The translations under genes and the position numbers were made by a program. A DNA stretch of 64,000 nt from Eutreptiella sp. 'Long Island Sound 2002' (Eukaryota; Protista; Euglenida). The stretch spans positions 53,692,001 to 53,756,000 of the forward strand of contig OZ038378.1 in assembly GCA_964036045.1 (NCBI GenBank). Reading direction: 5' to 3'. The first letter of the stretch is position 1. The number at the start of each line of letters is the position of its first letter. Below the pieces are notes generated by a model. The model did not search any database, had not been told where the DNA came from, and was given only the letters and a program-made list of their open reading frames with translations. This document shows, in pieces, positions 593 through 43,269 of the stretch.

Positions 593-869
593 TTCGTTTG
601 CTTTTATTCCATGTTTCCCCTCTTCGTCTTAGCTCTCAAATTATTGACAATGGCCCTTGCTGCTCCCGACGCTTGGGGTGTGTCGCTAGAAGGTGTGCGT
701 AGAACCCCCCTCCCCCCTTTGGGTACCACTAGAACCACGATGTGCAGGCGTTTACAATGCCTATCAGTCACAGTAGGAGTTCCTATAAGTGTCCTAAGTC
801 CAAAGCAAGCCTAGCTTGTGAAGGGCCACACGCTATGTTGAAGTTCCAAAAATGACCAAAAGCGCACAA

Positions 870-1028
870 AGTTGGGTTCCAGCACGGGTTCCGACGCAAA
901 AAGGGGGGTTCCAGCAGGGGTTCGAGCAGGGGTTCTAGCGCAGAAAGGGGGTTCCAACATGGGTTCCAACAGAAGGTTGCAGCGCAGAAAGGGGTTCCAA
1001 CAAGGGGTTCCAGCAGGGGTTCCAGCAC
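870..1028 (+). repeat. E1/E2-type intergenic block of GGGGTTCCAGC-like short repeats
   Basis: Many degenerate copies; similar blocks at 9965-10190, 11990-12132, 13880-14045, 55380-55540, 57720-57900, 59240-59370 and 61100-61255. Confidence 0.85.
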
Positions 1029-1065
1029 CTTTGTTTCACCTTTGTTCCCTTCCATTTCAGCCCAC

Positions 1066-1784
1066 ATGCCTTTGTTGGCCCCCTTGGTCGACTGGGCCAA
1101 GGCTGCCCGGGCTGCCGTGGGCACTCGGGGCTATGTTGGCCCCGATGGGTTGGGCTGCACCGACCTCGCCGCCCACCCCGACACCAAGGTGGCGATCCCC
1201 TCGGCACCACCATTGCCCGCATCTGCCTCACGCGCCCCCTTCTCGCCGCCGACAAGCCGCCTTGCGCCCTCACCGACGGGCTGCAGGGGGTCTTGGAGGA
1301 CAACCCCGCCGTGCCGATCCTGCAGGTCCGGCTGCATGCGGACGACGTGGATGATGTCATCCAAGCCTGCACCGGGAGGGCGAACCCCACTATCAACAAG
1401 ATGCAACGGTGTCATGTGGGCGCCATGTGGGGACGGAGGGCACCACGCTTCTCTTCGCCGCCCACAAGCCCACCACCACGAAGGCCGCGAACGACAAGTA
1501 CCCCTTCAAGCACCCCCACCTCGACACCCTCCGGTACATGCGGATAGCAAGCCCGCCATGGCCCTGCCCAACTACTCGCTCAGCAGCCACTCCCCCTACC
1601 GTTGGAAGCCGGAGCTCGTGGGGTTGACTACGCCGGTGCCGATGGAGAGCGAGGACGCGGTCTTGCCCCTCCCCATGTGCCACGCCTTGCCGCTCATTGG
1701 GACAAGCGAACCGGTGAAGCAGGTGGAAGTCTTCCGGGAAGCGAACGAGGAACTCTCGGAGTTGGGTCGGACGGGGCACATGTT
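1066..1784 (+). pseudogene. E1 cargo gene 1, N-terminal domain (frameshifted), fused to the dioxygenase at 8551
   Basis: YSLSSHSPYRWKPELVGLTTP...LPLPMCHALPLIG matches YSLATSTPLHWRPNDRYGLTTP...LPFRMRHPLPLIG (56017 ORF) and YSLCKCTACEWDGDGRGLTLP (46460 ORF). Confidence 0.75.
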
Positions 1785-1974
1785 TGTACCCTTCGTGAAC
1801 CGGTCGTTTGAATCCGAGTTTCACGGTACCGTGAATTTCACCTATTTTTGCTGTGTTTTGCTCGTAACTTGGTGCCACTGTGTGCTTTTGTCGTGCTATC
1901 TTGGCCCAAAGTAAGATGCAACAAATAGGTGCAATTTAGAGGTTTGGATTAGCCGCATGGTTCAACACATTTGG

Positions 1975-2130
1975 TGAGATTCGCGTGAATGTGAAATTCA
2001 CGCACCCAAATTCTCGCATAAATTGGCGCTAGATTCAAAGATTCACGAGAATGTAAAATTTGCACGAATTTGGTACGAATTGCGTACGAATTTCGTACGA
2101 ATTTGGTACGAATTTCGTACGAATTTACCC
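1975..2130. repeat. B-specific palindrome block (AAATTCGTACGAATTT, TCACGTGA)
   Basis: Multiple copies; repeated at 4020-4195, 6120-6260 and 8210-8300, in each case between genes of B. Confidence 0.9.
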
Positions 2131-2192
2131 TCATTTCCACTGTTTCGCTTTCTCACAGCTGTCAAAGCCTTTCGTCGCATTCTCTTTTGACC

Positions 2193-3919
2193 ATGTTCCA
2201 GCAGACTATGTCCCAGCTCGCCAGCCTGGCCTCGCGCCTCGACCCCGTAGCCGACACCCTCGCCCACTACCAAGCCCTCCCCGTCGCCCACCATCAATTG
2301 GAGGAGGCGACGTACCTGTTGGGCGCACTGGGGGTGGATGATGTTGTGGGCTGGGCAGCATCCCTCGACCCCTCCCCCGAGGTCATTCACATCGACGTGC
2401 GCAGCCCCTCCTGCAAGTCCTACCTGGGGGGGAGGGGCTGGGCCACAACGTTGTGGAGGGAACTGCGCTACCAAATCCCCTCCCTTAAATTTCCGCATCT
2501 GACCCCTCTACCTTCCAGCGTTGACGAGCTTCTCAATTCCATGCGCACTAACCGTGCGGGGAAGCATAAGGACGCCCACGTCCAGGTGTACCCCACCACT
2601 AACCTGGTCCATAACCCCCCCTGCGACATGGTGTGCCTGCAGGATCTTGCCGCAGGTGCACCGGCCGACCACTCCTTTTTTCTCTTCTCGTGGCACCTTG
2701 CCAACGCCCGGTGGTGGGATGATTTGGGCATCGCCCCTTTCCATCCCACCGTCCCCCCCCAGGTGTACATCCCCGACATCACCCACCCCACCTTCTACAC
2801 TACAACTGCGTTGCAATGGTACCGTGGTGCCTCAATCCCCCCCCCTTTCATTTCAAGTGAACCCCCCCTCCGCACTGAACCCCTTCCCGACCCCCCTCAT
2901 GGGATGATGGGCAACCCCGACCCCGCCCCCGACACGGTTGGCCCCTCCCAGCCGCCCCTCAACTTTGTTGATGGGAACGGCTACATTGTGCTTCGGGGGC
3001 TTGTGGAAGCACGGGATTGCGAGGTGGGGTGAGCAAGAGCACCTTGGGCCCGGGGGTGGGGGGGCCTCTCTTCAAGAATTTCCACCCTCACCTCACCAAA
3101 AGTGTGCCTTAGGTTGGGGACCTCCACCCAATGACGCCAGGCAGCGTCATCGTGGCGAGTGTGGGGAGTGGGGCCCAGCTCCCCCACTCCGATGTCGCCA
3201 CCCACCCCGAGGTGCTCCCCCCCAACAGCAGGGACATCTCGGGGTGCCACCTGAGTACCTTCCTGTGCTTGTCAGAGGACTACCAGGTGGCGGTGCAAGC
3301 GGGGACGGCCCTAGGGGAGGCGGGGGAGGCACGCTGGGACACCATTCAGGTGCAGAGGGGGGACATGTTGCTGATGGTGGCCACTCGCCGCGACCATGGG
3401 TTGCGTGCCCTCCCCGACTCCAAGGATGGGCTGTAGGGGGCTGTTTTTAACTTGTGGACCCCCGACGGCGTGCACAAACACCATCAGCCCAACACCACGC
3501 ACCTGGACCCCACTCCCCCCAAGGAGGCCCCGGACGTTGCTGGCGATTTGTCCAGCTAGGACTTCCCTAGCGTGGACCAGGTGTTGTGGGTGGGGAAGGG
3601 GGCGGTTGGGAGAGTAGGGTTGTGGGAGGGGAATGCTGCCCAGGCCCTCTTCGCCGACCCCCCCCGGGAGTCGGTCCCGGCCGGCCCCCCCACCTCCCCC
3701 TTCCACCCCACCTTCCTCTCCTGGTCGGCCCCGGCCTCCGACCTCGCCGTCATCGAGGTCGGGGAGCAGTGCATGTTCTTCTTCGTGGGGCGCGTGCACC
3801 AGCCGGAGGTCTGCAAGGGGGACAATGCCGATGCGGAGGCGGAGATCCACTTTGCCATGACCGGCATTGCTCCCCCGGGGCGGCCAACCACACTGTGGCA
3901 TCCGGCGAACACGGCCTGA
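2193..3919 (+). pseudogene. B cargo gene 1: N-terminal domain plus PhyH-like 2OG-Fe(II) dioxygenase
   Basis: NFVDGNGYIVLRGLV resembles a PhyH N-terminus. SGAQLPHSD gives the HxD motif; QRGDMLLM...RDHG gives a distal His. In-frame TAG stops at 3434 and 3557 and a frameshift near 3030-3060. Confidence 0.65.
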
Positions 3920-4275
3920 GCGTGGCGGTCGCCCAAGTGCGCGAAGGCCGGGGCATGGGCAATCACATGCCCATGTGAGTGCAAGGTGTGCTTGCTTGTG
4001 TGTTTGCTTTGTTCAATGGCAAATTGGATGAAATTCACGTGGAATTCGTACCAAATTCGTACGAATTTTGTTCGAATTTCGTACCAATTTCACGTGAATA
4101 AATTTCTGTGAATATTGAGGCAATGTGGAATTCGTACGACATTGGTACGAATTTCGTACGAATTTCAGACGAAATTCTGTGAATTTCGTCCAATTTCTTC
4201 GTTTTGTCGTTGCATTGCTCCATGTTTGCTCGCCCATTCTCAATTGGTGCCTTGCACACTTCTCCCCTTCTGTAG

Positions 4276-5728
4276 GTCCCGTTCTACGCGTGGTCGCCGG
4301 ACATTCGGCACCACACCCGGCGCCGGTACAAGCCCCGGCCTCGATTGCCCGAGGAGCACGGCGAGCCGCCCGGAGGCACCGGTGGTGGACGGACCCCGAG
4401 CGAGTCCGGCAGTGGGCGCAGTGTGGGCTCGCGGCGCTCTGGACGTTCTGCACGGACCGGCAGCGAGGCCAGCACCGTTGCGGGGCATGTGCCGCGCGAG
4501 CTGGTCGTCCCCATGCTGTCCCTCGAAGACTTGGGCACTGTCCACACCGAGTCCTCCCCGGACCGGGTCACCCTGGCGCCCAGGCAGCCGGATCCGGCCT
4601 GGACGCAGAAGGTGCCGCCCTGGCCCGATGGGGGGCAGCGGCATCTCTCTGCCGTGTGGGACATGGTCTTGCACCCCCGGGGGGTGCAGGGCACCCTCCG
4701 CATCTCCTTCCCCTGCCGCATTGTGGTCATGGGGGGATCCAACCTGCCCAAGGGGCAAGAGCTGGTGGGCCTGTTTGCCTACAGGCTTGTGAGCGGGCAG
4801 TGGCGGGTGTAGACCGGGGTGGCGCGGATTGGGGAGGAGGGGACGGCGACCACGGCTGCGGTCTTTGGGCTGAATGTGGTCACGGGGTGGGACAAGCGGA
4901 GGCCGGACTGGGTGGACGTCGCATGGCTTGGCATGCGCGTCCATGTGGGGAGGCAGCGGAAGATGGGGGTTGATGACGTCATTGACGTCGAGGGGCAGGA
5001 AGAACCCCCCACCCCTTGGGCCCGGAAGCGGAAAGGCCACCCCCCCCAAGGGGACACCGAGCCCCCCCCCCCCCCCTCAAAAGCCCCGCGTACGGCCACC
5101 CCGGCGGAGCGGGCAGAGCGGGCGGAGCCGACGGCGGGGCGGGGGCACAGGGGGGCGGTGCACAAGTGGGTGCAGCTGCAGTAGAAGCTGCAGCGGTCGG
5201 GGGCCTGGGAGGCGCGCGCGATCAGGGCGGAGGCCGCCAACCGCGACCTACAGGCCCGCCTGTCCAGAGCCATCTAGGACAGGCAGGACGCCGAGTCGCG
5301 GTTGGTGGACGTCACCAAGGAGCGGGGCCGCCCAGCCACCACGGTGAAAACTCTGGAGCGCGACCTGGCGACGGCGCTCAAGGCAAAGCCACCGGCACAT
5401 GCAGCACAGGCAAGGGAGGGGCCTGAGGGTGCCGAGGCCCCCGGGTGACAGGCGGGGGGGGGGGGGCAGTTCCGCCGGTATCTGGTACCTTCCGGCCGAG
5501 GCATGCGCCGGCCAGATGTCGGCGGTGTCCACCGGCATGCGGATGGCCATGATGGTCAGTGGCCAGCAGGCCGATGTGGATAGCGTGGCCCCCGACGCCC
5601 CGAGGGTGAGTGCCGCACGGGAGGAGGTGCGCCGGCAGTACCCCCCCCCCCCCACCCCCTCACTCCCGCGCTATGGACCCCTCCTTTTTGGAGGCGCTGG
5701 CGGAGCAAAGCTCCCAGGGCTCCGCTAA
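4276..5728 (+). pseudogene. B cargo gene 2: beta-rich domain followed by coiled-coil
   Basis: Long frame after a ctgtag acceptor, interrupted by TAG at 4810, 5182 and 5275. C-terminal EARAIRAEAANRDLQARLSRAI is heptad-like. Confidence 0.55.
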
Positions 5729-6314
5729 CCGGAGCTCTGCTCCAGGGGGGGGGGGGGGGTAGCTCACCCTTTTACTTCGGGACCACCCGTCCCTCTTCTC
5801 CACGGACGTTATTTGTACATTTTTATATATGAATGTATGTACAAATATCCTTTCCCCCCCCCCCCCCAAGCATGGGCAGTTTGAGTGACATGTGGGGCAC
5901 TCACCCCCCACTTTGCGACATTTTCTTCAGCACTGTTTGTCTTTTATTCGGGATCTTCTATGCCCCCTGATGTGTTACACTGTTGACTGTGTGTCAGCCG
6001 GAATGATGACCATTGGACTGGGTGTGTGGTAAACCATGAACTCCATCCTTTGCTTGCTTTGTGAGGACCAACGAGGGCAAAAGGATGAGTCAAATTTTCT
6101 CTTCGGCAGAAATTCTCTGACAGTCACGTGAAATTCGTACAAAATTGGTACGAATTTCGTACGAATTTCACATTGCCTGAATATTCACACACATTCATTC
6201 ACGTGAAATTCTCATGAAATTTGTACGAATTTTGTATGAATTTTTGTGTATTTCGTCCAATTGCGTGCGAATTACACTAGATTCCCACAAACTTTAGTTA
6301 TCCGGGACAGGGGG

Positions 6315-7918
6315 ATGGTAGAAACCTGCGATAAATGCCTCCCCCATTCCACAGGTCTTGTACCTCACACCATGCCGCGGCCCAAAGAGCCATTCCATTT
6401 GTTAGCGGGTCGTACACAACGAAGGTGCCTACAAGAGCTCCAGCAAGTTGTTACCAAGGAGCTTGCAGCACCCTACACCGTCAAGTACCTGCCCGACACG
6501 GGGCAAATAGTGCTTACCCCCGAAACAAGAGTTGTACTGACCGTCCAGCCTCAGCCCACCATGGAGGATAGGTTGATTATGGCCGTTTGGCGGATTTGGT
6601 CATTGCACCTCTCTAGGACGGAGTCGCGGTACCTAGTGGGGAGCATGACGTACAGTGTGGTATGGGACCACGTGTACGGCATGCTTCGGCAGCTAGCGTT
6701 ACCGGAGTCTCGGGCGTTCACTGCCCATACAGGAGACGACACGGCCATCCATGGTTCGGCTTGCTACCTACCTGACCGCATCGGCCACCTGTTCAAGTGT
6801 TGACCACCCCCAACCTGGGACATCATGCAGCCCGGGGACCGACGGCTCCATTGCTTGCCTATTGCGGTGCACGGTACATCGAGGCATGAGGCCTCGCACG
6901 TCCATCGCACGCTTGGTGGCACCGCTAGCCCGAACCAACTATCTAGTTGGTGGCTATTAGGGGTCAGTGAAAAGTGGGAGACCCTCTACGCGGCCTCCCA
7001 AGAAATTGATTTTGATGACGAGTTGCACAAGGCCGCAACCGTAAGTTTTAAGAATACGGGAGGGAACGATAGGCAGTCCCTTTTTTTTTGTGTGCAGAGG
7101 GGAAAGCACGGGTCCTCATGGCGGGCTGCCAAAACAGTAAGGCAGAATCCCCTGGTGCCACCGTGTGTTGGGTCTGCATGCGTAACCGTGCTCTGTGCCT
7201 TGCCACCTTTGGCATAGCAAGTGTGATAGACGGCAATCAGGAAGGGGCTGTTGCCATAGGTGCTATATATGGGACCATTACGAGTGATAGGCGAGTGCCT
7301 GATTCTGGCCTCCATGGGGTCCTTCGTGTCCTATTTTGTGGCATCAACGGGACACGGGACCTAGTTGTACAATTGACAGGGAAGGCACCGGCCACCGTGG
7401 CACGCACCATGCTGCAACTGGTTCTAGATGAGGCATGGCTTGCTGCACGAACTTGCACCCGTGCCTCATTAAATAATGACAAGGCAAACAGCAAGGAGAA
7501 GGTGAGGATGGAGTGTGCTGCTGCCATCCATTTCATGCGGACAAGGGTTGGGATAAGATAATAGATGCTTGCCTACAGCAGCCTAGTCTGAGGCAGGCAC
7601 TAAGTAGGGGGAAAATGTTGGGAGTCGGTGTGCAAAACGTGGTGGGAGAATTTTGCAAGCATGTGTGTATACGCGTGGCGTTACGCATGGTTCTCCGGGG
7701 CCGACTTGGGGCGGCTCCGGAACTATAGCATAGCCATGGGCGCTGCCCGGAATGAGCTGCAGTGGGGCACACTTCTGTGGACGCATCTTTGGATCGACCA
7801 CATGTATTATTTTGCAAAGAAGTGGAGAATCTTGTCAAAGTTCTCCTGCTTTGCCACGGAGGGAAGTCACCGGAGGCTGAAGCGCATGTTGCGCAACACC
7901 GGGGGCAAGTGGTTGTGA
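6315..7918 (+). pseudogene. B transposase, RAG1/Transib-like DDE
   Basis: PRPKEPFHLLAGRTQRRCLQEL (NBD-like), PIAVHGT, LCAEGK...CWVC, PDSGLHGVLRV, WTHLWIDH...FSCFATEGSHRRLK. Several frameshifts. Confidence 0.72.
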
Positions 7919-8550
7919 ACAACCACACCATTGCTGATAGCCTTTGGTTGCATGGGTGGAACGGACCAAAAGGGCACAACATGGGCAAGGGCCCATAAGT
8001 GTACAAACATATGCAAGCAGTACAAGAAGACGGCTTCTAACCGACATGCAGTACCTTCAAACTCTACAGTGGCGGTTCCGGTGTCGCAAGAGACGGACAT
8101 GAGATCACCACACAAACGTAGACCACTGTTGCCTGTGACCGGGATGGATGCCGGGACGCCTATTAGGGGTGTGAGGACAAATCAGGGGTGGCACACCGGT
8201 AACAGCTGAGTAAAATCACGTGAATTCACGTGAAACTCGTACGAAATTCGTACGAAATTTGTGCGAATTTCGTACGAATTCACGTGAATTCATGTGAATC
8301 GGCTACAGGGTTACCGGGTTTAGGCACCTCTCGTTTTGGGCACGGTTCGGGCGTGATGGATGCTTTCGGGGCGGGACCTTCATTGCATGATCCGTAATGA
8401 AGCTGGGGGAAGAATTTTGGCCCCTCAAATCCCTCGGAAGGATCCAGAAATATGGCGTTTTCCCCCGACAACCTCAAAATTTGGGTAAATTCACGTGAAA
8501 TTCACGCAATTATTCAAACGGCCACTTAAGCCCCGTTCACGAAGGGTACA

Positions 8551-9941
8551 TTCAAGGACGGGTTCCTAGCGAGGGATGGCGACTTGCTGGCGAACATGAA
8601 GATCGAGGCGGACAACGTAGGTCACAGGTGGGTCGGCATCTTCAACGTGGCATGGCCAAGCCCAAACCGGCCACCCGATCCAGGTGACAGGGCTGCGGTG
8701 TACGCGGTGTTTCGGACGGACAAAGGGGGTCAAGAAGGTCTTCAGCTTCCTCACGTTGTACTTTGGGCGCAAGGACTTGTGCAACGCCTCTCTACGAAGT
8801 ACCCGGGTCTGTTCTTGGTGAAGGTTGGGTACCTTCGGGCAACGTCGGATCAGCCACAACTATGGCATCGGGATCTTCCGCTGGAGTTGCCAATCGTTGG
8901 GGTGGAGCACGCCTTCTCCTGCTTCATGCCTGTGAATCTGGACTGCCCCATGGACGGCCGGGAGAACATGTTCGTGTACGGTTCAGGCTCTGGTGATCCC
9001 TATCCGTGCCAGGAGGTCTTGATGAGTATGGTGGCGGGCGACCTGTGGATACTGAACAGTTACGTCATTCACCGTGGTGGGGCTGTCCCGAGACATGTGC
9101 CGCCTGGATCAACCCGTATCATTGCCTTTGCCGCCATTGCCACACACCGCGTCGACTACGAGACCCCCATGCCGATCATCCCGCCTCCCTGGGCTGAAGC
9201 CCCCGCGCAAAAAACCGTCGCCACCGTCCCCGAAGGTCGTGCACTGTACAGCAGTGCAGTGCAACCGCGTGGTGAAGGCCGACCCGCCAGGGAAGTGTTT
9301 CGCCTTTGACGAACGTCCCCTTTGTGCTCCAAATGTCGGGCAACTCTTTGAAGACTGTCAGCGGGATTCTGGCTATCCTGCAGTGGAGGCCGCCCCTGGA
9401 GCTGCTGTGGAGGCCGTGGCGATGTCAGCCGAGTGAGCACAGGAAGTCGATGAGGACCTGGGGACGCAGAAGATCGTGGAGGAGGATCTGTGCGGGTTTG
9501 CGGCTTTGGTGATGATGCCCTTGGACCAGACGGTGCTGTACACCACCCATCGCCCAGGGCCACTGGCGGCAGAGATTTCTGCTCGGCTGGTGATCCACGC
9601 GTCCGCCCAACCCTCCGCCCCCGAAGATTGTCCCCTTGGCCCCTTTGCCCGGGGAGGAGGAGTTGGAGGCCCCGACCACAAGCAAGTTCCACATCATCGC
9701 CACGCAGCCGGGCAGCCTAATGGTGGTGCGAGAAGGCCAGGTGGGTGGGATGGCAGTGGTGGAGGACACCTCGGACCCCCCGGTCGCCCAAGTACTTGGA
9801 TGGGATGTTGCCGGCACCCACCCGCGCGTCGTTGCCACGTCTCTCCTGGTCCAATCGGGGCTTCTGGTGGCCAACCCTGAGCGCCTGAAGGAGTACTGGT
9901 GCCTTGCCAACAGATATGAGCCTACAGTGTGGCGGGGCTAA
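8551..9941 (+). pseudogene. E1 cargo gene 1, C-terminal part: PhyH-like 2OG-Fe(II) dioxygenase, Cys-rich segment and C-terminal domain
   Basis: QPQLWHRD...AGDLWILNSYVIHRGG...RIIAF. The C-terminal TSKFHIIATQPGS...LLVQSGLLVANP matches TSHFPLVKTNPGT...ILVESGLVLENP at 57326-57729. Confidence 0.75.
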
Positions 9942-10229
9942 GGCTTTAGGCACAGCAGGCCTCGGGGGGGGGGGGGGTGCTGGAAGGTTGCCGGAAGGGT
10001 CGGTGGAAGGGATTCCAGCGCTCGAAGGGTCTGCTGAAAGGGTGCCAGAAAGCTGCTGGAAGGGGTTCCAGCACTGGAAGGGTCCGCTGGAAGGGTCCGC
10101 TGGAAGGGGTTTCAGCGATGGAAGGGGGGTTCCAACAGGGTTCCAGCCAGGGGTTCCAGGGCAGTAAGGGGTTCCAGCAGGGGTTCCAACAGGTATCGTA
10201 TCACGCGTTTTACCTGCATTTCGTCCTCT

Positions 10230-11374
10230 TTAAGGCTACAGTGGATGTCTGGCCTGAACTGGTACAACGGGACGAGTCGGTGGCCGAGCCCGAGGCGCGA
10301 GGGGATAGTGCAGTATTTGTGGTGGACAGCGTGTCGGTCGCGTGGCTGGCCCGTGAGGTGGTGACTTCGCCAACGAGTGCAGCAAGGAAGCCGGGGGCCG
10401 TGGCCCAGCTCATGTTCCAGTCTGGTCAAACGCCGTGATACAAGGTTTTGGAGCTCAATGTGGCGATAGCGAGCGGCTAGAAGGTGGTGTGCACGTTTCC
10501 GGTGCGAGTGAAGGGTGTGCAAGGCAAGAAGCGAGCTGGGTACATCTTTGGCGTTGGAAAAGGGTTGCATGGATCTTGGTGGTACCAAATGTACCATGAG
10601 GAGGATGGGCGGAGCGTGTGGTATGGTCTGCGGGGGTTGCAAGGCGTTGGAGGAGATGAGGTTCCGGAGTCCGCCATGAAGGTGTTCGCTGCCTGGGTGA
10701 GGGAGCGCAAGAAGACTTACGTTGGTGGCCGAGGGCACACAAGGGGCGCTGCGATTGAGGTGGAAGGAGACGACGATGATGCCGACGACAAGGAGCAGCC
10801 GAAGGACAAAGACAAAGACAAAGGCAAGGACAAAGCCAAGGACGAGCCAAAGGAGAAAGGCAAGGACAAAGGCCAGCGCAAGGACAAGGACAAGGACAAG
10901 GACAAGGACAAGGATAAGGACAAGGACAAGGACAAGGACAAGGACAAGACAACCCGGGCATCTCAGTCACCGCAGTCGCAGTCCCAGCAGTCCCAGAAGT
11001 CCCAGCAAATGGTTGACGCTTGGGCTATGGCTGAGGAGGTGGTACAGCGGTGCAAGGACTCCTTGACGCAGCAGATGAGAGTGACCCTCATAGATTGCGT
11101 CCCTTCGGCAGTGGCAAAGGCGATGTTTGACGCCTTCAAGAGCAAGGCAGAGACACTGATTGGCCGGCTGACCAAGCAGCTTGAGACGGAGCGCACGGGA
11201 CAGGCGAACGCCAAGGCCCAATTGCACAATGAGCGGAAACGGGTCAGGGAGTTGGAGCTGGAGAATGAGAGCATGAAGAAGCAGCTGGTGGAGAGCAACA
11301 CCAAAACGGCCGAAGCAAAGCAACACGCAGAGCAGCTGTTGGCGGTGATTGCGGGCAATTACAAGAAGGCGTAG
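10230..11374 (+). pseudogene. E1 cargo gene 2: coiled-coil protein with KD dipeptide repeat
   Basis: ORF 10484-11374 with (GACAAG)n encoding KDKDKD at about 10800-10948 and a heptad-rich C-terminus. Upstream frame broken by stops. Homologous in position and sequence to 57930-59056. Confidence 0.65.
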
Positions 11375-11377
11375 GCA

Positions 11378-11580
11378 CTGGAGACGAGACCTTTTGGGAC
11401 CTGGAGACGAGACTTGTCGGCACCTTTTGGGACCTAGTGATGAGACTGGTTGGGACCTGGAATAGGAGACCTGTTGGGACCTGGAGAGCACACCTGTTGG
11501 GACCTCGAGAGCACACTTGTTGGGACCCGGAGAGCAGATCTTTTGGGACCTGGAGAGCAGACCTGTTGGGACCTGAGATA
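11378..11580 (+). repeat. Tandem repeat of about 20-22 bp (TGTTGGGACCTGGAGAGCAGACC-like)
   Basis: About 9 degenerate copies directly after the stop codon of the coiled-coil gene. Confidence 0.85.
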
Positions 11581-12161
11581 ACACCTGCATGTGCATGTGC
11601 ATGTACGTGGTGCGCTGCGATGGTGCTGACGGCAATGCGCCACCTTGAACGGAAACCTTTTTTGGTCTTAGCTCCTAGGTTGCGTGTTACCTCGCGTAGG
11701 ACATTAGTTGCGATGTGCACGAAGTGCCTAAGGTGGTGTCACGAGTGGGAGGCTTCACATAGCCTACCCCTTGGGGACGTCACCAAGGTTTACGCCCTAT
11801 ATGCATGCATTCATTCAAAGTTTTGATATATTATATCATTAGCCTGTTTGATTCTGGACTGAGGGGGGTGGTACCATGGGGTGCAACACATGCATACACT
11901 ATACGACATTGCAAAGTGTTGACCATGACGTTGCACTCTGCCTGTGCCTGGTCTTTGGGCTCAATGAGAGGGAAAGGCAAAACAAGGGGGGGGGGCAGTG
12001 CTAGAAGGGGGTGCTGGAAGTGGTGCTCGAAGGGGTTCCAGCGCTGGAAGGGTTCGCTGGAAGGGTCCGCTAGAAGGGGGTTCCTGTGCAGAAAGGGGTT
12101 CTAGCAAGGGGTTCCAGCAGGGGTTCTAGCGGTCACACCTTGCCCGTTTGTCACAGAAACC

Positions 12162-13702
12162 ATGGAGAGGGCGGTTGCCGCACTTGTGGGTAGCATTCCA
12201 CGGCTCAAGCCATACACGCCCATCAAGGGGAAGGCCCGAGCAGAGCGGCGGCACCACATACAGACCATCATGCGGGAACTTTTAGTGGATCCGGAGGAAG
12301 TTGTCGTTGAGGGTGGTGGGGGCTTGTACATCCGTTTTGCCGGGCACGACGGCGATGAGTACCCTCGTGTAGTGCGGCCTATCGGACAATGGGCCACCGG
12401 TAGGAGATTGAAGTTATCAATACGGCAGAGGTTGGCCCTCTCGCCCGAATGCACGCGCCGCGATCTTGCCGAAACGTCACAAGGTTAACACCGTACTCCA
12501 CCACAACCTACACTATCAATGGCCCCATTATGATCGAGCGGCGGTGCGCAGCGACAGCAACACTAGAAGGCCTCGTTTTTACGCAATTGAAAATAGCTGA
12601 GACCCTAGGGGAGTTTGAAGTGGAAACCGAGAAGATTTGGATTTGAATATGCCCTGATGCAACGTCATTGTGGCACACATCGGTCACTAAGATCGATGTT
12701 TTTGTTACCTGCTAGGCCCCGGGGTTTTTTGCTGCACGGGACATCCACAAATTGGTGATGTGGGTGTGCACGGATGGGCCCGATGACGCCGCACGGCTGC
12801 AGGCTTTAGACGAGGATGCGGGCCTAAATGCCCAAAGCATCCACCTGCAGGAAAGTTGTACATTCCGTGTCAAAAACGAAACCAAAAAGTTTCAATGTAA
12901 TATGACCGGGGAGGGGAAACTAATGATGGTGACGAACGGGGGTGGGGGGGAGAAGTGTTGGTGGGACTGCCTCGATGCCACCGGCCGATAGAGGGCACGG
13001 TAAACAAAATTCAATGGGGGTCATTTCTTCGAAGTGTGTGTATTCGCATTGGAGACTATGCACACGCAGGTTGTAGGGTAACCAATGCTTTCAAGAAGCG
13101 CCGAACAGAAACTTTTACCACGTTAACAGTGGGTGTTCTTGGAGTGCGGTGAATTGCTAGTGAGTTTGCCAATACATGGTCTACCCTTTTAGCAGATGTA
13201 AAGCATGTGGCTCCTGCTGACAGGCTTTTTCAAAGACCACTAAGGCAGGGCAATTTGATATGAGCACCTCCGTGTTGTCCTTGAGAGACCCTAAGTACCA
13301 TGTTCGAATTGTACATGGCCTCAGGAACCATTTTCCTGACACCATGTTTGGTGGTGTCCTCTTGTGGATACTTATTGAAGTGTTGCTCGCAATATACTCA
13401 GCCTATATGCCTTGTGTAGGCAAAAGACACCATTGACCAATGGTCAGGTGCAAGAGGCCAAGACTCACTGCCGTAAAATCGGTGAGGCATGGCTTCGATT
13501 GGGTTGGAATTCAACCCCATGGGTCCACTGGACAGTGGCCCATTGTGGAGCGGTGCTCCAAAAGTATCGTAACCTTTATGCGTTCAGCAGTATACCTGCG
13601 GAACACAGGCATAAGCCTTTCAAACTCGCCTTTCAAACAGCATCCGTGGGTGGTGCCTTCGCCGCCCACGCGTTTCATGACGTGGTCTCACCCATGTATT
13701 GA
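12162..13702 (+). pseudogene. E1 transposase, RAG1/Transib-like DDE
   Basis: ICPDATSLW, CTDGPDD, MTGEGKLMMVTNG...KCWWDC, IGDYAHAGCRV, STPWVHWTVAH...FSSIPAEHRHKPFK. Colinear with 59394-60950 and 47731-49300. Confidence 0.75.
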
Positions 13703-14235
13703 ACGTGGAGACCCTTGACGTGGGGTTACGACACTGAGCGGCCCTGCAAAGGCTTGTTCTTGGCGAGGCCACAAAGGACCGAAGAAAAAGGCACTGCATG
13801 TACGCTTGAGAAACCAAGTTTGAACCCGGTGGATGCATTTAGTGCCCTTCTTGCAAAAATCCTTTGCGCACAAACCCCCCCGCAGAAAGGGTGCAGAAAG
13901 GGGGTTCCAGCGCACAAAGGGTGTACAGAAGGGGTGCCGAACGGGGGTTCTAGCGCACAAAGGGGGGTGCACGAAGGGCGCACAAAGGGTGCAGAAAGGG
14001 TGAAGAAAGGGTGCTAGAACCCCACTTCCAGCAAAAGGGGGGGGTGTAGAAAATCCGGCAAAACGGACCGTTTCGGACAAAAGTGAAAATCAGCCACCAA
14101 AAGGGGCATAAACATGTGGTGATTGGCCCCAAACCACTTTCTAACCACACAAGGTGGTGCGGCTGGGGTAATCATGCAAAAAGGGCGCTAGAAGGGGGGG
14201 GTCTTTGCGCACACCTTCTAGCGACGCACCCCACT

Positions 14236-15154
14236 TGATGCGAGCACCATCAAAAGCCCCTTGGGGTACGTCGCCTTGGTGGTCCGCAGGGGTTCACGGG
14301 CGTTTCTGTGTTTGTTTGGGATTAATGACCCCCCCCCAACGCAAAAGCTATTTCTTCCTCAGGCTCTGCTTCGTTGATGAAGCGACGGGGGAATACATTG
14401 GGTGGGAGATGTGGCAGAAGCTGGGCAGGGGGTCGGACATCCACCAAATGGGGGGGTTACGACCCCGCCCAAAGTGTGTGTGATGCAACCGGTTTGAGGG
14501 CTCAGGAGTATGCGCCCAAGGGGGGAAGGCCCACAAAGCGGGGGCATGAAGTGGTGGTGGTGGAGGCGGAGGAGGGCCACCCCCCCACCCCTAAGGGTAA
14601 AGCCCCCACCCCCGCCCCTAAGCCATCGAAGGTGGCCAAGGTGGTAGCCCAGTCCCCCCCCTCCCCCCTTGATGTGGGGGGCTTGCATGGCCGCCACTGT
14701 GGCCACCCACGGGATGGACGCTTGCAAGACTTTGGTGGAGCAAGCAACCGTCACGGGGGTGGAGGCCCCATAGGATAGGGGAAGGGCAGCCGACAGCAGG
14801 TCGGCCTTGTCAAGGGCACAGAAGGTCCAGGGCAACACTTAGTGTGCCCTGGACCGTTCCCTTGAAGTGGCCAACAAGAGGGGGGAGGAGTTGGTGGCGC
14901 TGAGGGGGGACCTGAAGGAGGCCAACGAGGGGAGACAAAAGGCCGAGGTGGAGGCCCCACAGCTGAGGGTGGAGGTGGAGGCGTTGCGCAGGACGAGGAA
15001 TGACCTCCAACAGCGCTTGGGGGTGGCTGAGGCACAGCTGAGGGTGGAGGCGGAGGCGATGCGCAGGACGAGGGATGACCTCCAACAGCGCGTGACTGAG
15101 GCGCAGGTGCGCAGCCTCAACTCCACCCTCAGCGCCACCTACACCGCCCAATAG
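14236..15154 (+). pseudogene. Coiled-coil cargo gene of element X (5' part at about 600-673, split by E1)
   Basis: ORF 14867-15154 has a duplicated QLRVE(V/A)EA(L/M)RRTR(N/D)DLQQR heptad unit. Across the E1 empty site one frame reads WPLLLPTLDASTIKSPLGYVALVVRRG. Confidence 0.5.
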
Positions 15155-15195
15155 GCAGGGGTGTAGAGTCAGGGTAGCAGCACGAGTGGGAGTCA

Positions 15196-15389
15196 ATGAC
15201 TCTGGGTTTGCTGAGGGGGTTGCCTAAGGGCATTTTTCGGGCGGAGGAGCGATATGGGGCCCCAGGGGACATGTGCCACTTGGACCTCGTGGGCAGCGGA
15301 AACCGCAACCCCTCTAATTGTAAGTTGACTAGGGTGGTTGCTGCTACCTTGCGGCCTCCCCTCACCCCCTTGGTTGCGGGGCTCAATGA

Positions 15390-15390
<1 letters not shown>
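15196..15390 (+). pseudogene. 5' part of the X-borne TET/JBP-like 2OG-Fe(II) dioxygenase
   Basis: The frame ends ...LTPLVAGLNED at the (TA)n tract; a plausible continuation (RHAPTWFTWCRFQ) lies at about 27325 after the last (TA)n. Confidence 0.4.

Positions 15391-15455
<65 letters not shown>
15391..15455. repeat. (TA)n microsatellite
   Basis: Directly visible. Confidence 0.97.
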
Positions 15456-15943
15456 TCCTTTGGCTACAGGTACGCATTTCATAAAGTCCGGTCTTCCGGT
15501 ATGCCCGGTCTTCAGGCTTCGCGCAGTTCATTCTAGCAACACTTCTACTTTACGCCGGTTTACGCAGTTTATGCAGTTTATGCAGACCGCACAATTTATG
15601 CAATTCGTGTGGGAACACAGAAGACCGGTCCTGGCCGGTCCGCCCGGTCTGATCTGGTCTCTGTACTAATTGCATAAAACCCCTTAGACCGAGCGGTCCG
15701 ATCAGTTTGCGCAGGTCATTTCACTCGAAAGTGTACGTGCGTTTGTGTGTGTGTGTGTGTGTGTGTGGTGTATGTGTGTTTGTGTGTTTGCACGTGTGTG
15801 TTTGTTTGTGCCACATACCAATACCTTGCATCCCCAGCCAGAGCCGTTGAGGGGTGCCCGCATTCGGGGTCGTTACCTCTATTATACGGCGGGAGCTTCG
15901 CAATGGCGCACTTCCCCCCATGCCGTATGACCGTCCTTCAGCC

Positions 15944-17293
15944 CTACTGATGGTACTTCGCAAAGCAATCAATGTGCAACGAAACGCCACAAGCTTGGCA
16001 TTTTTACATCGACGTTCGGCCCGACAGCACACACATGTGCCTCGCTTGGCACGGATAGGGAGGTGCTTTGCCTGCACCTCATTTTTTCGGGCAGGAAAGA
16101 TGTACCGCATGAGACGCCACTGCCAATTGTGCATGCTTTCCACTGGGGCACAAAGTTTCAACGCTTTGCACGAGGTAAAAGCGTTGGTGGATGCCGTGCG
16201 CAGCAACATGCCGTTCAAAGCCTTCCACTAGTTTGGAAACCGCTGCTCCACCCGATGCTGCAAGCACAGCTGGTTCCACACATCGACCCCGGGTGCAAAT
16301 GTGCGGTAGTTGGCCACAATGCTGGGTAGGCGATACCTACGCTTCCGCCATACATGGGGGCCATGGTGGCACTTGGTGACCAAGGGCACAGCCCGGGCGG
16401 CCTCTTGCCCACCTTTGGGCTTTTGAATATGCTTAGCGCATACCCATCCTCCTTGTGAACCACTGTGTTCACCTTCTGAGGCTGTAGCCCCTTGCTTCCT
16501 TGCTCAACGAGATCTGCCGATTAGGGGATAAGCATCAAGAAGGGTCGAGACTGTGTCGCTAGAGACCTAGCTGTACCATCGGAACCAAAGTAGGTGTCCG
16601 CCACCAACACCCGGTCGCTGGGTGCCACATCATGCCACAGTTGCACAATGTCCGTGGGGGTGTAATGGCTAGCATAGGTGGTTGGAGGTGGGGGGGTTTC
16701 ACGAGGCATTGCACCACGATACAAATAAAATGCCAAACGTACCGGTCCTGAGCATCACACACGAGATACAATTTTACCCCCGTGGTATGCGGTTTCCGAG
16801 GGATAAATTGTCTAAATAGGAATAGGCCCTTGTGTGGGACGATAGATTCATCGCGACATATAATGTCACCTAATACCCACCCATTGTGCCATTGTTGGGT
16901 GCACATCTCAATCAGACCATCCACACCCGGATCCGCGAAGCGTTGCAACTTGTAGAACGCCCCAGGGTCCGGGAAGGGGTACTCCATGTAGGGGTTGTAG
17001 TACATGCTGTCCCTATCCCATAGGTCATCAATGCGGCGGGGTTGTAGCATTCCGAGACCTAATCGGAAAAGGATGTAGCGGGGTAGCAAGGGGACCAAGT
17101 GGGCATGCCCCTTGGCGCGGAGGCAAATGTCCCTGCACGCCATGATGGGCCGCATCATGTACTCATACACCGTGACCGGTGTGTCCGCGGCGCGTGTACC
17201 CTCCAATAGGCTGGTGCCTCGTGCAACACTTTGGGTGAAGTCATACAAAGCCTCATTAGGATCCAATGGACGCGGTTGCCAATCCGATTGCAT
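15944..17293 (-). pseudogene. piggyBac-type transposase (DDE_Tnp_1_7) with C-terminal Cys-rich domain
   Basis: CRDESIVPHKG...RQFIPRKPHTTGVKLY, VLVADTYFGS, PSIVANYRTFAPGVDVWNQ and CVCC...KCQACGVSLHIDCFAKYH*. Frameshifts and stops. Confidence 0.9.
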
Positions 17294-17699
17294 AGTGATT
17301 TGATTGCAGTAGAGGGAAAAGGAAATTTGCTGCACAAACTGCACAAACTTCAGGAACAGGCCACACCACCCCGTTTGTTGCACTTTACTCGAAGACCGCT
17401 ACAGACCGGTCCGCACCGGTCCTTGGACAAACTGCACCAACTCATCTAAACTGTCCGGTCCGAGCAGTTTATGCAGTTTATGCTGGTTGTTCAATTTTTC
17501 TATTCTTTACCTGTTTTCTCTATATTGTCTACCGATTAGCTACTTTTTATTTCTATTTCTATTTCTATTTCTTTAGCAGGGGGGGGGGGGGGGGCATAGA
17601 GGGGGGGGTGGCCTTTTGCTGATAGACTGAGAAGGTCACATGCAATGGGCATTGTAGCAATTCGTTGAACAAACAACATGGGTCGGCAATGTTTGAAGA

Positions 17700-20450
17700 A
17701 AGTGTTGTAGAAGCGAGCACCACCAACGGCATGGCTCACCACGGCACCACCATGGAAAAGCGGTCCGGGGTGCTTTAAGCAGTGCCCGGGACATCAGAGC
17801 CAAGGCCAGCATCAACACCCGCATCACCACCAGCCGGACCGGAATCATCGGAACCATCGGGCTCATCATTGTTTTTCTTAGCATCCAATTTAGCTTGCAA
17901 TTGGGCCTCCATTTGCCTTTGCTTCAGGAGGAACATCTGGTTCACATTGGTGTTCCTATTCTTCGTGTACCCGCGCACAAAGGCCACCTGCAGCTGCAGC
18001 CCCTGAGTGCTTGCGTCCTCAGCCTGGAAAAAATGCAACAAAACGCACAAACTGCACGAAGCGCTTGGACCGCGCGGTTCGTTTCAGTTTATGAGAAGAC
18101 TGGTACGAACCGGTCCGGACCGGTCCTTGTACAAACCGCGTAAAACGATCCAAACGGGCCGGTCCGATCATTTCGAGCAGTTTATGCAATTGATACAGTT
18201 CACACCTGTTGCTCGGGATCAATTTCCTCGTTCGAGTCTGTGTCCTCTTATTTCGGGGCTTCTTCTTCCTGTTTTTTCTCCTCTTCTCTTGTCTCCGTCT
18301 TTCCTCCATTGCCTGAGTTGGCGGCTTCCACTCGCACTTGCATTGTTATGTTGTACAACGTTACGTTAGCCCATGCAATGATAACCACAACCCCGCAACA
18401 TGGCAACAAACCTTCCCGCTACGCAAGGCATCCAACTCTTCTCGGAGCCGTTGCTGCTCCCTCTTCATCCGCTCCAACTCCTCCGCCCGGTCGCGCATAA
18501 GCTAGTCCGCCTGCCCCTGCGCTTCGCGCGCCTCTTGCTTCTCGCGCGCCCGCTCCAGCTCCCGCCTGTCTCTTTCGGCCTATCATAAGCAACGAAATGG
18601 GACAAACTGCATAAAGCGATCGAAACGATCGGACCGGACAGTTCATTTGACTTGGCACAGAAACCGGTCTGGACCGGTCTTGCACAAACAGCATAAACCG
18701 ATCGAAACGATCGGACCGGACAGTTCGTCTCAGTTGACACAAAGACCGGTGTGGACCATTCTTCGAACAAACAGTTCAAGCTGCGACAGACTACAAAAAC
18801 AGACCTCTTTCAAGGCCCATTGATGCTTTGCTTCCTCCATTCTTTCCCATTGGCGGGCAAACCAAGGGATGGACTGGATCTCCGCCAAGAGCCCTTCGGT
18901 GCTTCGGGTGCTCTCCAACGGTTCCTCCTAGTTGGCATCCGGCAGCCCCTTGTGGTGCAGCTATGGGCATAAAGGGTTAAGAAAACGAAAGGAACAAGAC
19001 AGGTCGAGGGGGTGGGGGGGACAATTTTTTACATGTATAATCTTATGCTGCGTCCGACAAAGCTCACGGCGCAGCAATTTGTAGCGGTTCCGCACGTCCG
19101 CAGTCCACATATCCTCCAGCGGGGGCGTGAGGAGGTCGAGCAACCGCTTCGCTGGGGACTGGTGCGGACGGGGTGCACCGGTAGCGCCGGTCACGGGATT
19201 GCGGCGGGGGTTGGATCGGGATGAACAGGAGGGGCTGGGGTCGCGCGGCGGGGAGTAGGGGTCGTAGTCCCCGTGTTCCTGGTTTTCTTTCTTCACCCAT
19301 GAGCCTCGGCACTTCCCGATGTTGCGCAAGAGGTCCTTTGCAGAAAAACAACACAAAAGGGTATAAACGGGTCGAACCGGTCGGACCGCTCAATTTAGCG
19401 CGTTTTATGCAGTTTGTTCAAAGAACGGTCCGGACCGGTCCGGTCCGGTCTTTACACGAAGTGAAATGAACGGTTCTGTCTCGTCTGTTCGATCAATTTG
19501 TCACGTCTTATGCAGTTGGCGCAGAAGAAGTACACACCTGCATAATCCTTGTACTTGTAGGCTTCACCGCGGAGCGTGGGCACACCGTTCGTTGGCGAGG
19601 GGATGTACTCGCTCCGCAGAAAGAAGTGCCAGCGCAGCAGGTCGTTGGGGACCTCCAGCACCAATCTCAGCGCGGCCACCAATTGCTTCTTGGTGTACAT
19701 GTTGCTCCTCAGGCACAACTTGACATGGGTCCCCACGGAGTCTATTGAAACCCCGTATTGTTCCAACCCATTGTTGACCCGAACCACCTCCCTGTTGGTG
19801 AGGGTGGCATCGTCCTCCTGTGAGGCCTTGCGCCCCCTTTTTGATTCCCGCCTTTGATTGGGGTCGTCCTCCTCGCTATCCTGCTCCTGGAAAAATTCTT
19901 GTTACAAAGTTTTCTTACGCCTACCCTTTCCCTTTTCCTATTTCTTGAGTTTCTCCTCCTCTTCGCTCAACGAGTTCCTCCTCTACAATCGACCCCTCCA
20001 CTCCCTTGTTCTCGTCCTCCCCCTCTTCATCCTCGTCCTCCTCGTCACCATCCTCCTCCTCATCCTCGTCCACATCCACAAGCGTCTTGGACCTCTTTGC
20101 CTGACTCCCCGATGCCCGCTATTGCACCCTCTCCTTGGGGGTCTTTGCCTTGGCACCCTTCTAATTCACCCAACTTCCCACAACCGTCTCGGCCTCAAAC
20201 ACCACATCCCCTTTGTTCTGTTGCCTCTTGACGTTTCCATTTTTGTCTTCCGTGTATTCTTTGGTGTTTGTGAGGGTCACCTTCCCTTTTTCCACCTTGG
20301 ACACCAACCCACTGAAACGGGCTTCGTGTGAGCCTTTCTTCAAGAAAACTACCCAGTGCCCTTTCTCAATGTTCTTGAAGGACTAGGGGACCACCTTAGT
20401 ATCCTTGTTGGCATGGGGGAGGGCTTGACCGGGACCCCACAGGCATGGCA
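17700..20450 (-). pseudogene. Accessory spliced gene(s) of element D, function unknown
   Basis: Coding-like exons at about 17780-18025, 18790-19335, 19560-20343, with pyrimidine-rich AG acceptors (ttttttccag, tttttctgcaaag). Includes a charged low-complexity segment. Confidence 0.45.
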
Positions 20451-21129
20451 AGGAAGAAACTGAAGCAAAAAGGTGGAAAAACCTCTTGAACATTAGAAAA
20501 AAGCACAAGCTGCACGAACTGCACGAACCGGTCGGACCGGCCCGTTCATTTCACTTTAGATGAAGACCGGTCCAGACCGGTCTGGACCGGTCTGCGTACC
20601 AGCTGCGCGAAATCTCCTAAACGGAATGTGCTACACGGCAAAGCTTATTAACCTGTCATAGTGGCCTAACGTCCTTTGGGGAGCATGCCTACACAAGCAT
20701 AGCAAAGCAAGGAGAGTGCAAAACACCTGCACCACCATAAATTGCACTGTAACCGCTCGGTTCATACTAGTTGAAACGGAGACCGGTGTGGACCGGTGTA
20801 GACCAGCCTCTCGACAAACTGCATAAGGTGATATCTCACAATGGCTCTACATTTACATGCCCATCATGCAATGTTAAGGTGTTCCAATACCATGAGAACC
20901 CTGGGGAAACATCCATGCAACGTGTGGAGTACATGGTATGTGTGTGCACGCTCCGTAGGTGCGTTGTATGTGCATGTTGTTTGAAGTGTGGTGAGCTGCG
21001 CAAACTCATCGGACCGCCAAGTTCGTTTGAGTTGGTACAAAGACCGGTCTAGACCGGTCTTGTGGTCTGCCGAACTAGTCTACATGTAAAACTCTAATCC
21101 TCCATTGAATCATCAAAAACCACCAAAAC

Positions 21130-27183
<6,054 letters not shown>

Positions 27184-27324: not shown

Positions 27325-27803
27325 TGCACACGCCATGCACCAACATGGTTCACATGGTGTAGGTTCCAAATTGCTCACCCCCAAGGGACTGAGACCATGG
27401 GCCTTCACGCCCATTTGGTGATGGGGCGCCCATGGCGCTGATTGTGTGTGTGGGGTCTTTTAGGAGAGGATATTTTCTGGGTGTAGACTGGTGGCCTGCT
27501 GAATCCCTCCCTCAGGGACAAAAAGCGGCACATCCGTGTGTACACGTATTGAGGTTTGGGGGTGGGACTAACAAGGCCAAACCCCAGCCCGACGACACGG
27601 GAGCCCCAGTGTTGTTCAACAACCGGGCACTACACGCTCCATTGCCATGGGAGGGTGAGCGATTTAGCGTGATTTTCTATAGTGCAGGGGGGTTGCTGCA
27701 TTGCACGCCTACGTGGCGGCAGCAACTTGTGGACCTTGGTTTTAGGCCGCCCAATGTGTTCTCACCCGTCAAGGTAGTGCGCACCAACCTCTGCTCTAAC
27801 TAG
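27325..27803 (+). pseudogene. TET/JBP-like 2OG-Fe(II) dioxygenase remnant (3' part)
   Basis: FTWCRFQ...TMGLH, frameshift, GDGAPMALIVCVGSFRRG...GAPVLFNNRALHAPLPWEGERFSVIFY. The H...H...RxSxxFY pattern is typical of this fold; the Asp of HxD falls in the frameshift. Confidence 0.55.
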
Positions 27804-28629
27804 TTATTGTGGTAGTTATCGCGCTCTACCTTGGTGCTCCAACTAGTTATCGTGCTGGGTTACCGCGCCCTAACTTAGTTATCGCGGGGGTTATTGCGTG
27901 GGTTGTTGCGCGTGGTTTTTGAGGCCGTTGCGCCGAAACCGCAGAGTAGGATGCGGATAGAGTAGGCCACTGTATTGGCCAGCACTCCGTTTTACCCCAC
28001 GGCCGTGGGCCTGATCTGTTGCACACTTTCGATTGTACCCCCCTACCCCCTGGCAATCCCCCCCATTGCAATCTGCCCCCCCTCACCGGGGAGACCGCCA
28101 CCTCCATGTTTTTCAAGTTAACATGTATTGTGTTGGTTTGTGTTGCCCATCAGCTTTACGCATGGCCTTGCATTGCTTTCCCATTTCTTCAAATCAGGCA
28201 TTTGTGTGTGTTCTGTGATATTCTCTCTCCAAAGGTGTTGTATGGGTGTGTGTGGGATGCGCTGTTCTGGGGCGTGGTGCGGAACCCCCCCAGTTTTGGG
28301 GGTTGTTAATATTCCTTTGTCTACGACATAAATGACGAATTGGGTCCTTCTACGGGACGGGAGAAACACCCTTGCTTTTACAACGCTTCCGGGGGTTTTT
28401 GAGGAGGCCCGATGCACTCTCGCATGAGTTTTCATGCCGTTCATCCATTTTGAAGGAGAGACGCACTTTGCATGTTGCCTGTGCCTCTGCTTCCATCGTT
28501 CTTAGCGTTGTATAGGTGCCGCCTGTCGGCCGCGTTTTTCGCGTCTCGCTTTGGTGCTTTCACATGTGCTTGTAGAGGTATGTTTGCTTCGTCTGCCGCG
28601 TTCTATTGGTCTTCCCCGTTCCCCATGAG

Positions 28630-42992: not shown

Positions 42993-43269
42993 CAGACCGT
43001 TGTTTGGTTCCAGACACAAGACGACCTGATCTTCGTTTCATGGGTGTCAATAATTAGGTGTTGTCTGGTACCACACACAACAGGAGGAATTCTGCTTTGA
43101 CAGGCCGCATTAGTGAGTTGTTGTCTGGTTCCACACAAGGAGGTCCAAGCACACACTTTGACGAGGCTAAAAGAAGTTGTGTCTGGTTCCAAACGCAAGC
43201 GGGACACGGTCTGGTCTGCGAACGATCCAATTGCGCCAAATGTCTGTTATGAGAAGCAACAGAACGTAA

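Follow-up and report, generated by a model that had tools for sequence, protein, structure and literature searches.

Ac/Ds, En/Spm (the TNPA sites), Tol2 and piggyBac carry short transposase-binding repeats inside their terminal inverted repeats (TIRs); these are family-specific, bound by dimers and set in opposite orientation at the two ends. One element-encoded protein can also read palindromes across the intergenic regions of its own element, as at the sites of the ParB-like KorB on RK2 and at the internal enhancer/operator of phage Mu, which serves both transposition and gene control. The transposon piggyBat has three subterminal dimer sites, the third of which restrains activity (PMC11707139). 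In Arabidopsis, VANC21 of VANDAL21 binds a 9-bp motif, and this binding removes DNA methylation (Hosaka et al. 2017, PMC5735166). In red-algal Plavaka elements, tandem inverted repeats lie beside PAG3, a fusion of a ParB-like domain with a 2-oxoglutarate (2OG) oxygenase, which was proposed to bind and modify its own element (10.1101/2025.02.11.637652). Here we analyse 64,000 nucleotides of the euglenid Eutreptiella sp. 'Long Island Sound 2002' (assembly GCA_964036045.1, contig OZ038378.1, positions 53,692,001 to 53,756,000), hereafter the window. It is a nest of DNA transposons, the elements B, D, X, C, E1, E2 and E3, in which short tandem arrays private to each family fill the boundaries between genes. 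These arrays would, on balance, probably be sites for a protein that the element itself encodes. Our literature search found no paper describing these euglenid elements or their arrays.

Private arrays at ends and gene boundaries

We set element borders by aligning further copies from the same assembly, and found B nested within E1. An earlier note on this DNA had given each element its own palindrome or short-repeat signature. All the motifs that it named are present; their core half-sites exceed the Markov-1 expectation 5-150 times, and 90-100% of them lie within the cognate element. By exact count, the window contains seven copies each of TTCGTACGAA and TCACGTGA, all inside 2092-8491; 11 of GACCGGTC, ten of them inside 15623-21052; 11 of GGGGTTCCAGC, every one in E1 or E2; and ten of AGGAAGGGG, nine of them in E3. 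The motifs GTTATCGCGCGATAAC and CTAACTAGTTAG occur once and three times, respectively. Allowing at most three mismatches, we found the 18-bp C palindrome 16 times, where 0.04 matches were expected, and never outside 38814-45486. Over 175 kb, comprising the window and eight loci of the same assembly, we found 1-2.6 motifs per kb in cognate elements and 0-0.02 per kb outside them. The blocks are thus confined by element borders, as had been claimed, and are not scattered over the surveyed DNA: TTCGTACGAA occurs 39 times in B-type copies and nowhere else.

The motifs quoted by the earlier note turned out to be fragments of longer units that form tandem arrays with periods of 9-13 bp (Tandem Repeats Finder, TRF). 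The full site is a pair of inverted arms: GTACGAA and TTCGTAC around a single A or T in B, on an 11-bp lattice; GCTGGAA and TTCCAGC around four to eight G in E1 and E2; and the arms CAGGAA and TTCCTG in E3. In D, GACCGGTC recurs every 10 bp and is joined by a 9-bp unit and a third conserved segment in a composite block of about 80 bp. Repeat distances in B, E and X are 11, 22, 33, 43-44, 53-54 and 65-66 bp, multiples of about 11 bp, while units in D recur at 9-10 bp and those in C at about 60 bp; the sites therefore face one side of the DNA helix. Each family's motif holds a symmetric CG or CWG site (W, A or T). Array units often deviate from CCAG to CTAG in E1 and E2 (860-1030, 11995-12132 and 57722-57912), and from CG to TG or CA in B (4021-4190). 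Such changes are the pattern that deamination of methylated CWG and CG sites would be expected to leave.

The elements share a common plan: terminal repeat, 130-190 bp of unique sequence, array, gene, array, further genes each followed by an array, unique sequence and terminal repeat. The motif is repeated in both subterminal regions inside the TIRs in B, E1 and D, and the same subterminal units recur in every gap between an element's genes. These gaps are nearly all array: the first units lie 0-110 bp past one stop codon, and the last are 0-100 bp from the following ATG. The gene-1 reading frame of intact B-type copies even extends into array 2. Arrays flank gene 1 on both sides in B, E1 and E2. 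Far from being confined to the terminal few hundred bases, the arrays reach deep inside the elements, at 4021-4190, 6110-6290, 9975-10195 and 11995-12132 and in six blocks of D, whereas X has a single internal array (Table 1). The claim that blocks recur at nearly every intergenic or intronic gap stands for intergenic gaps. For introns it is at most a conjecture: the sole clear intron in gene 1 of B (about 3024-3112) has no array, and the internal blocks of D may lie either in introns or between genes.

The internal arrays of E1 and E2 consist of 3'-type units followed by 5'-type units. Those of B use the subterminal type of unit and cannot be spare ends, because the 15-bp TIR of B is found at both ends only. 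In B, arrays 2 and 3 have 37-bp centres (4094-4124 and 6172-6202) that are reverse complements of each other, and the B-type copy L004 has matching orientations; the flip is thus older than the split between B and L004. The edges of B read GTAC at 1786-1789 and 8546-8549, which is also the core of the B array unit and may be either a target-site duplication or part of the TIR.

Other descriptions of the arrays were rejected. E1 and E2 keep their runs of G on the coding strand, a rule that breaks down at the first array of E3 and of L002. A hairpin or cruciform is not a shared property, the folding potential against shuffled sequence being z -4 to -13 for B arrays and +0.6 to -2.5 for those of E1 and E2. 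Finally, a CRISPR (clustered regularly interspaced short palindromic repeat) array does not fit units that are abutting or overlapping half-sites, or the C palindromes, which are degenerate and spread over 6.7 kb between open reading frames (ORFs).

Table 1. Borders and arrays of the elements. Positions are those of the window, except where a locus name (L004, L006) precedes them.
Feature	Position	Strand	Remarks
B borders	1786-8549		colinear with L004 7610-14620 at 82-89% identity; perfect 15-bp TIR
B 5' TIR	1786-1800	+	15 bp; perfect partner 8535-8549; L004 homology begins here
B array 1 (5' subterminal)	1975-2127		GTACGAA/TTCGTAC half-sites on an 11-bp lattice; about 65 bp separate its end from gene-1 ATG at 2193
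B array 2	4021-4190		gap between genes 1 and 2; left and right units around a 37-bp centre, then a conserved tail
B array 2 counterparts	L004 9975-10119; L006 10085-10187		same position
B array 3	6110-6290		gap between gene 2 and transposase gene; centre is reverse complement of array 2 centre
B array 4 (3' subterminal)	8216-8300		followed by unique stretch, further units 8484-8512, TIR 8535-8549
E1 borders	~674-14233		26-bp terminal repeat
E1 array 1	860-1030	+	GGGGTTCCAGC-type units ahead of gene 1; E1 TIR begins ~674
E1 array 2	9975-10195	+	GCTGGAAGGG units, then GGGGTTCCAGC units; gap between gene 1 and coiled-coil gene
E1 array 3	11995-12132	+	immediately 5' of transposase gene
E1 array 4 (3' subterminal)	13880-14030	+	TIR ends ~14233
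E2 array 1	55385-55480	+	
E2 array 2	57722-57912	+	
E2 array 3	59243-59368	+	26 bp 5' of transposase ATG at 59394
E2 array 4	61110-61260	+	
E3 5' array	45862-45970	-	CAGGAA arms; C-run on top strand
E3 internal array	47445-47692	+	stops 40 bp short of ATG of intact 591-aa transposase ORF (47731-49503)
E3 3' array	49480-49625	+	overlaps transposase stop codon
E3 3' end	49811		alignment A1; E3 copy spans 45815-49811
D borders	15452-21137		89% identity to L007 over 5.7 kb
D block 1 (left end)	15480-15650		GACCGGTC and GCAGTTTAT units; downstream of piggyBac-like transposase gene
D block 2	17330-17490		immediately upstream (minus strand) of transposase ATG ~17293
D block 3	18060-18140		
D block 4	18600-18780		82-bp composite unit, 2.1 copies
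D block 5	19360-19450		flanked by two coding segments conserved in L008
D block 6	20505-20595		
D block 7 (short)	20775-20805		
D block 8 (right subterminal)	21000-21062		element end 21137
X internal array	27793-27879	+	GTTATCGCG and CTAACTAG units
Further X arrays	477-584; 34072-34184; 35407-35503		
C palindromes (16 copies, 18 bp)	38814-45486		clusters 38814-39072, 41326-41930, 43000-43318, 44359, 45408-45486; about 60 bp apart in cluster

Transposases, cargo genes and conservation among relatives

The arrays accompany transposases of different origins. D and X match the DDE_Tnp_1_7 domain (Pfam PF13843), scoring 41.1 and 33.5 bits where the cut-off is 22.4, and by this match are piggyBac-like. 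The transposases of B (6315-7918; 12350-14143 in L004) and E align as homologues over 321 columns (hhalign probability 93%, E 3e-7), and had no Pfam or PDB match by sequence or profile search. An alignment of 18 of them (A7) shows conserved D178, D254, C277-x2-C280, H483-x4-H488 and E508, that is, a D, D, E triad in which a CxxC pair follows the second D and an Hx4H pair precedes the E. We take this order and spacing to match the catalytic and zinc residues of RAG1/Transib, and on this residue order class the B and E transposases as RAG1/Transib-like. A language-model search gave a weak lead to RAG1 (0.89). The family has 885 relatives in a large protein library, and the AlphaFold model of the E3 transposase (predicted local distance difference test, pLDDT, 33) is too poor to use. 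The earlier note had seen the same design in three unrelated transposase lineages; by these classifications it is present in at least two unrelated superfamilies, RAG1/Transib-like (B, E) and piggyBac-like (D, X), while C, called Academ-like, would be the putative third.

The accessory genes are less widely shared. A dioxygenase-like gene was found only in B and E: gene 1 of B carries an HxD motif, with no Pfam match for B, and E2 matches PhyH weakly (E 8e-4), its 20.1 bits falling short of the cut-off of 22. We detected no homology between B and E in their first genes, nor between the cargo genes of the two elements, and Pfam revealed no oxygenase gene in D. The N-terminal exon of B gene 1 was modelled at pLDDT 39, and Foldseek on that poor model, like a PDB profile search, gave no ParB match. 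The coiled-coil gene occurs only in E1 and E2, which have three genes, while E3 and L002 have two.

Distant relatives retain the layout and either keep the motif or change it in all arrays at once, which speaks against slippage without conservation across copies. L006 and the B-type L004 have proteins 40-55% identical and essentially no nucleotide similarity. L006 has four arrays at gaps matching those of L004, all four with the decamer TTCGCGCGAA where B-type copies have TTCGTACGAA; the two decamers differ by a symmetric change at the palindrome centre, TA or CG. The transposases of D and L008 are 56% identical, and L008 keeps GACCGGTC in five blocks colinear with the shared coding segments. 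E1 and E2 have proteins 33-49% identical and no blastn match, and use the same site motif. The CAGGAA arms are common to E3, L001, L002 and L003, the last of which is 40% identical to E3. A 40-bp block of the E3 3' array is identical in E3, L001 and L002, whose coding DNA is 72-87% identical. In other assemblies or metagenomes, L003 has a 10-bp array abutting its ATG; L009, with 42% identity to B-type, carries an array built on another 11-bp palindrome, about 70 bp 5' of the ATG; and the contig of L011 opens with three or four 10-bp units. Overall, the arms of the array motif track the transposase tree. Gene order is also kept within B, L004 and L006, within E1 and E2, and within D, L007 and L008, so that cassette order and content do not vary freely among relatives, unlike those of integron-like gene cassettes. 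That arrays and motif are kept, or changed symmetrically and in concert, where nucleotide similarity is gone argues against neutral slippage and against a single host signal.

Close copies give a different picture. Between B and L004, arrays are about as similar as coding DNA (88% and 86-93%, respectively), with many whole-unit insertions and deletions, and 15-23% of array columns are gaps because unit number differs. These copies are dead and in neutral decay, which makes the comparison of array with coding identity uninformative either way. The locus L005 (7486-10449) is a B copy with an internal deletion joining the equivalents of window positions 3380 and 7315, with both breakpoints within genes and not in arrays. 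The junction was absent from the other members of the cluster, a result that is uninformative on amplification of L005.

Several observations concern the wider repeat landscape. B belongs to a family with a very high copy number: short contigs of DNA-like runs (two organism labels) map in their thousands to B at 90% identity or more (1975-7974), and the summed word depth over this interval is highest at the three arrays. The L005 locus also holds another element, rich in GTTCATAA and ATTATGAA units (31 copies), and L006 has a second element on the opposite strand (600-6450), with clusters of GGGCGAAATTTCGCCC-type palindromes near 630-700, 3640-3720 and 6070-6430 whose arms end in GAA. At 10655-12644, L008 has dense X-type units (CGCGATAAC, 23 copies) beside a second weak piggyBac-like ORF; the X family thus has relatives elsewhere with the same motif. 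Between 21137 and 26450, the window contains several copies of another repeat family with its own 11-bp units (TTTTTGACCCA, CAAAAATGGGT), amid long (AT)n and (AC)n tracts.

What the arrays may be for

Our results suggest that the arrays are family-private half-sites which an element-encoded DNA-binding protein probably recognises. The earlier note had offered element-specific binding arrays as one of its two interpretations, and they fit all the sequence evidence. A dimeric protein would coat the arrays, most simply through the N-terminal domain of the transposase, because the transposase is the sole kind of protein common to all families; in B and E the binder may instead, or also, be the dioxygenase accessory protein. 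The coiled-coil protein, which had been suggested too, cannot be the general binder, since its gene is absent from D, E3 and B. By marking its own DNA, an element would gather its ends for transposition, and would control its own genes or keep them open. Arrays at every gene boundary may add avidity and help to gather the ends, let the element regulate its own genes, or guide an accessory enzyme.

Some points weigh against an element-encoded reader. Both the function of the arrays and the candidate binder are drawn from sequence comparison. Transposases usually have their subterminal sites at the ends only, and additional ones can inhibit transposition (PMC11707139), so that a purely transpositional role of internal arrays is not obvious. 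In recently diverged copies the arrays are no better conserved than coding DNA, although this is expected for dead copies. Finally, L005 retains both ends without either internal array.

The arrays might act on chromatin instead of transposition, a special case of an element-encoded binder. They would guide the 2OG-Fe(II) dioxygenase, or another accessory protein, to remove or rewrite a base modification such as 5-methylcytosine, or to make a mark of the hydroxymethyl-U/base-J type, thereby keeping genes open or setting transcription boundaries. The HxD gene of B and E and the weak PhyH match of E2 fit this, as do the symmetric CG or CWG site of each motif and the changes from CCAG to CTAG and from CG to TG that methylated sites would give. 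The tandem inverted repeats of red-algal Plavaka adjoin PAG3 (10.1101/2025.02.11.637652), and VANC proves that such a system can exist (PMC5735166). Base J of Leishmania, which lies at T pairs 13 bp apart and near G-runs where transcription starts and stops (PMC4344527), provides a lead only. Yet D has the same design and no detectable oxygenase gene, the first genes of B and E have no detectable homology, and the poorly modelled N-terminal domain of B gene 1 gave no ParB match. We consider anti-silencing targets unlikely. A bolder version, which we hold to be quite unlikely, is a private address code: the RAG1-like or piggyBac-like transposase, or the accompanying dioxygenase, would read the arrays at gene boundaries, and the enzyme would rewrite base modification, by which the element would set the borders of its transcription units and escape silencing. 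If true, this code would be a euglenid counterpart of the base-J boundary marking of kinetoplastids, owned by a mobile element. In a further speculative reading, a RAG1-like enzyme might use internal arrays to invert or excise single gene cassettes.

Other explanations dispense with a dedicated reader. The internal arrays could be seams, either leftover ends of fused single-gene elements or sites of cassette swapping, with no present function. Every gene is indeed bracketed by arrays with inverted arms, the 3'-type units of E1 and E2 precede their 5'-type units, and cargo differs by subfamily. Contigs of DNA runs even join array to array (2104 to 6182 and 4006 to 6131, for example), but since one array repeats another, such joints can be read in more than one way, and we did not use them as evidence. 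Relics of assembly remain very unlikely: gene order and array positions are kept over deep divergence, internal arrays shift motif along with the terminal ones, which idle relics would not do, they have no TIR terminus, and L005, the sole clear deletion copy, is broken inside genes. Any multi-gene unit might also need sites for host factors, be they promoters, terminators, polyadenylation or trans-splicing signals, or insulators. The adjacency of arrays to stop and start codons, the recurrence of one design in at least two unrelated transposase superfamilies of a single host, and the coding-strand G-runs throughout E1 and E2 all fit such a need. However, the sequence differs by family and tracks element phylogeny, which argues against one host factor and for an element-encoded reader. 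The breach of the G-run rule, the inverted centre of B array 3 relative to array 2 and a folding potential not common to the families also speak against a host signal. The other interpretation in the earlier note, that the elements converged on one host signal for transcription, splicing or insulation, is thus disfavoured and highly improbable; in a weaker form, a host-imposed need for such arrays may exist. As for neutral minisatellites made by replication slippage in non-coding DNA, the variation in unit number between copies is what they would show, but the arrays hold position and motif where other non-coding similarity is lost, their motif changes are concerted and symmetric, and they are strictly confined to the cognate element. 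This explanation is scarcely credible.

Comparison with known systems

An element-encoded reader would place these arrays near the subterminal repeats bound by known transposases. The motif is likewise family-specific, present in both subterminal regions and changing with the transposase lineage, but known repeats occupy the terminal few hundred bases, whereas the same units here recur between genes. In reaching across intergenic regions the arrays recall KorB and Mu, which are bacterial, use single sites rather than arrays and have no demonstrated homology to the euglenid arrays.

If such a reader exists, each family is a natural matched pair of a DNA-binding domain and a short site. Close relatives that lie one symmetric base pair apart (TA or CG at the decamer centre) would then be a clean system for studying the recognition code, and the repeated capture of dioxygenases by transposons would be tied to a defined DNA target. 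The private motifs are also practical markers to delimit and classify the very many decayed transposon copies of this genome.

The closest likeness is to VANDAL elements and their VANC proteins. In both systems a tandem motif private to the family, and differing among related families, occupies intergenic and terminal non-coding parts, with fast turnover of unit number and units that evolve in concert. VANDAL is a Mutator-like element (MULE), whereas the transposases here are RAG1/Transib-like and piggyBac-like, and most euglenid motifs are palindromes or inverted arms, set on a lattice of about 11 bp. For VANC, both the binding and the loss of methylation have been proven, whereas a comparable reader of the euglenid arrays is putative; no VANC homologue is known for these elements, VANC-like domains having been sought by Pfam only. 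Like Plavaka with PAG3, some of these DNA transposons would combine a candidate accessory gene of 2OG-oxygenase type (here a weak PhyH match and an HxD motif) with family-variable inverted-repeat arrays. Unlike in the EnSpm/Plavaka elements, where arrays are reported beside PAG3 only, arrays here stand at both ends of an element as well as at each gene boundary, and a piggyBac-like element with no detected oxygenase has them too. The window brings RAG1-like and piggyBac-like cases together in one stretch, and shows as a rule that gene boundaries are filled with arrays. If their reader is encoded by the element, self-addressing, proven so far only for VANDAL in plants, would have arisen in RAG1/Transib-like and piggyBac-like elements of a distant protist.

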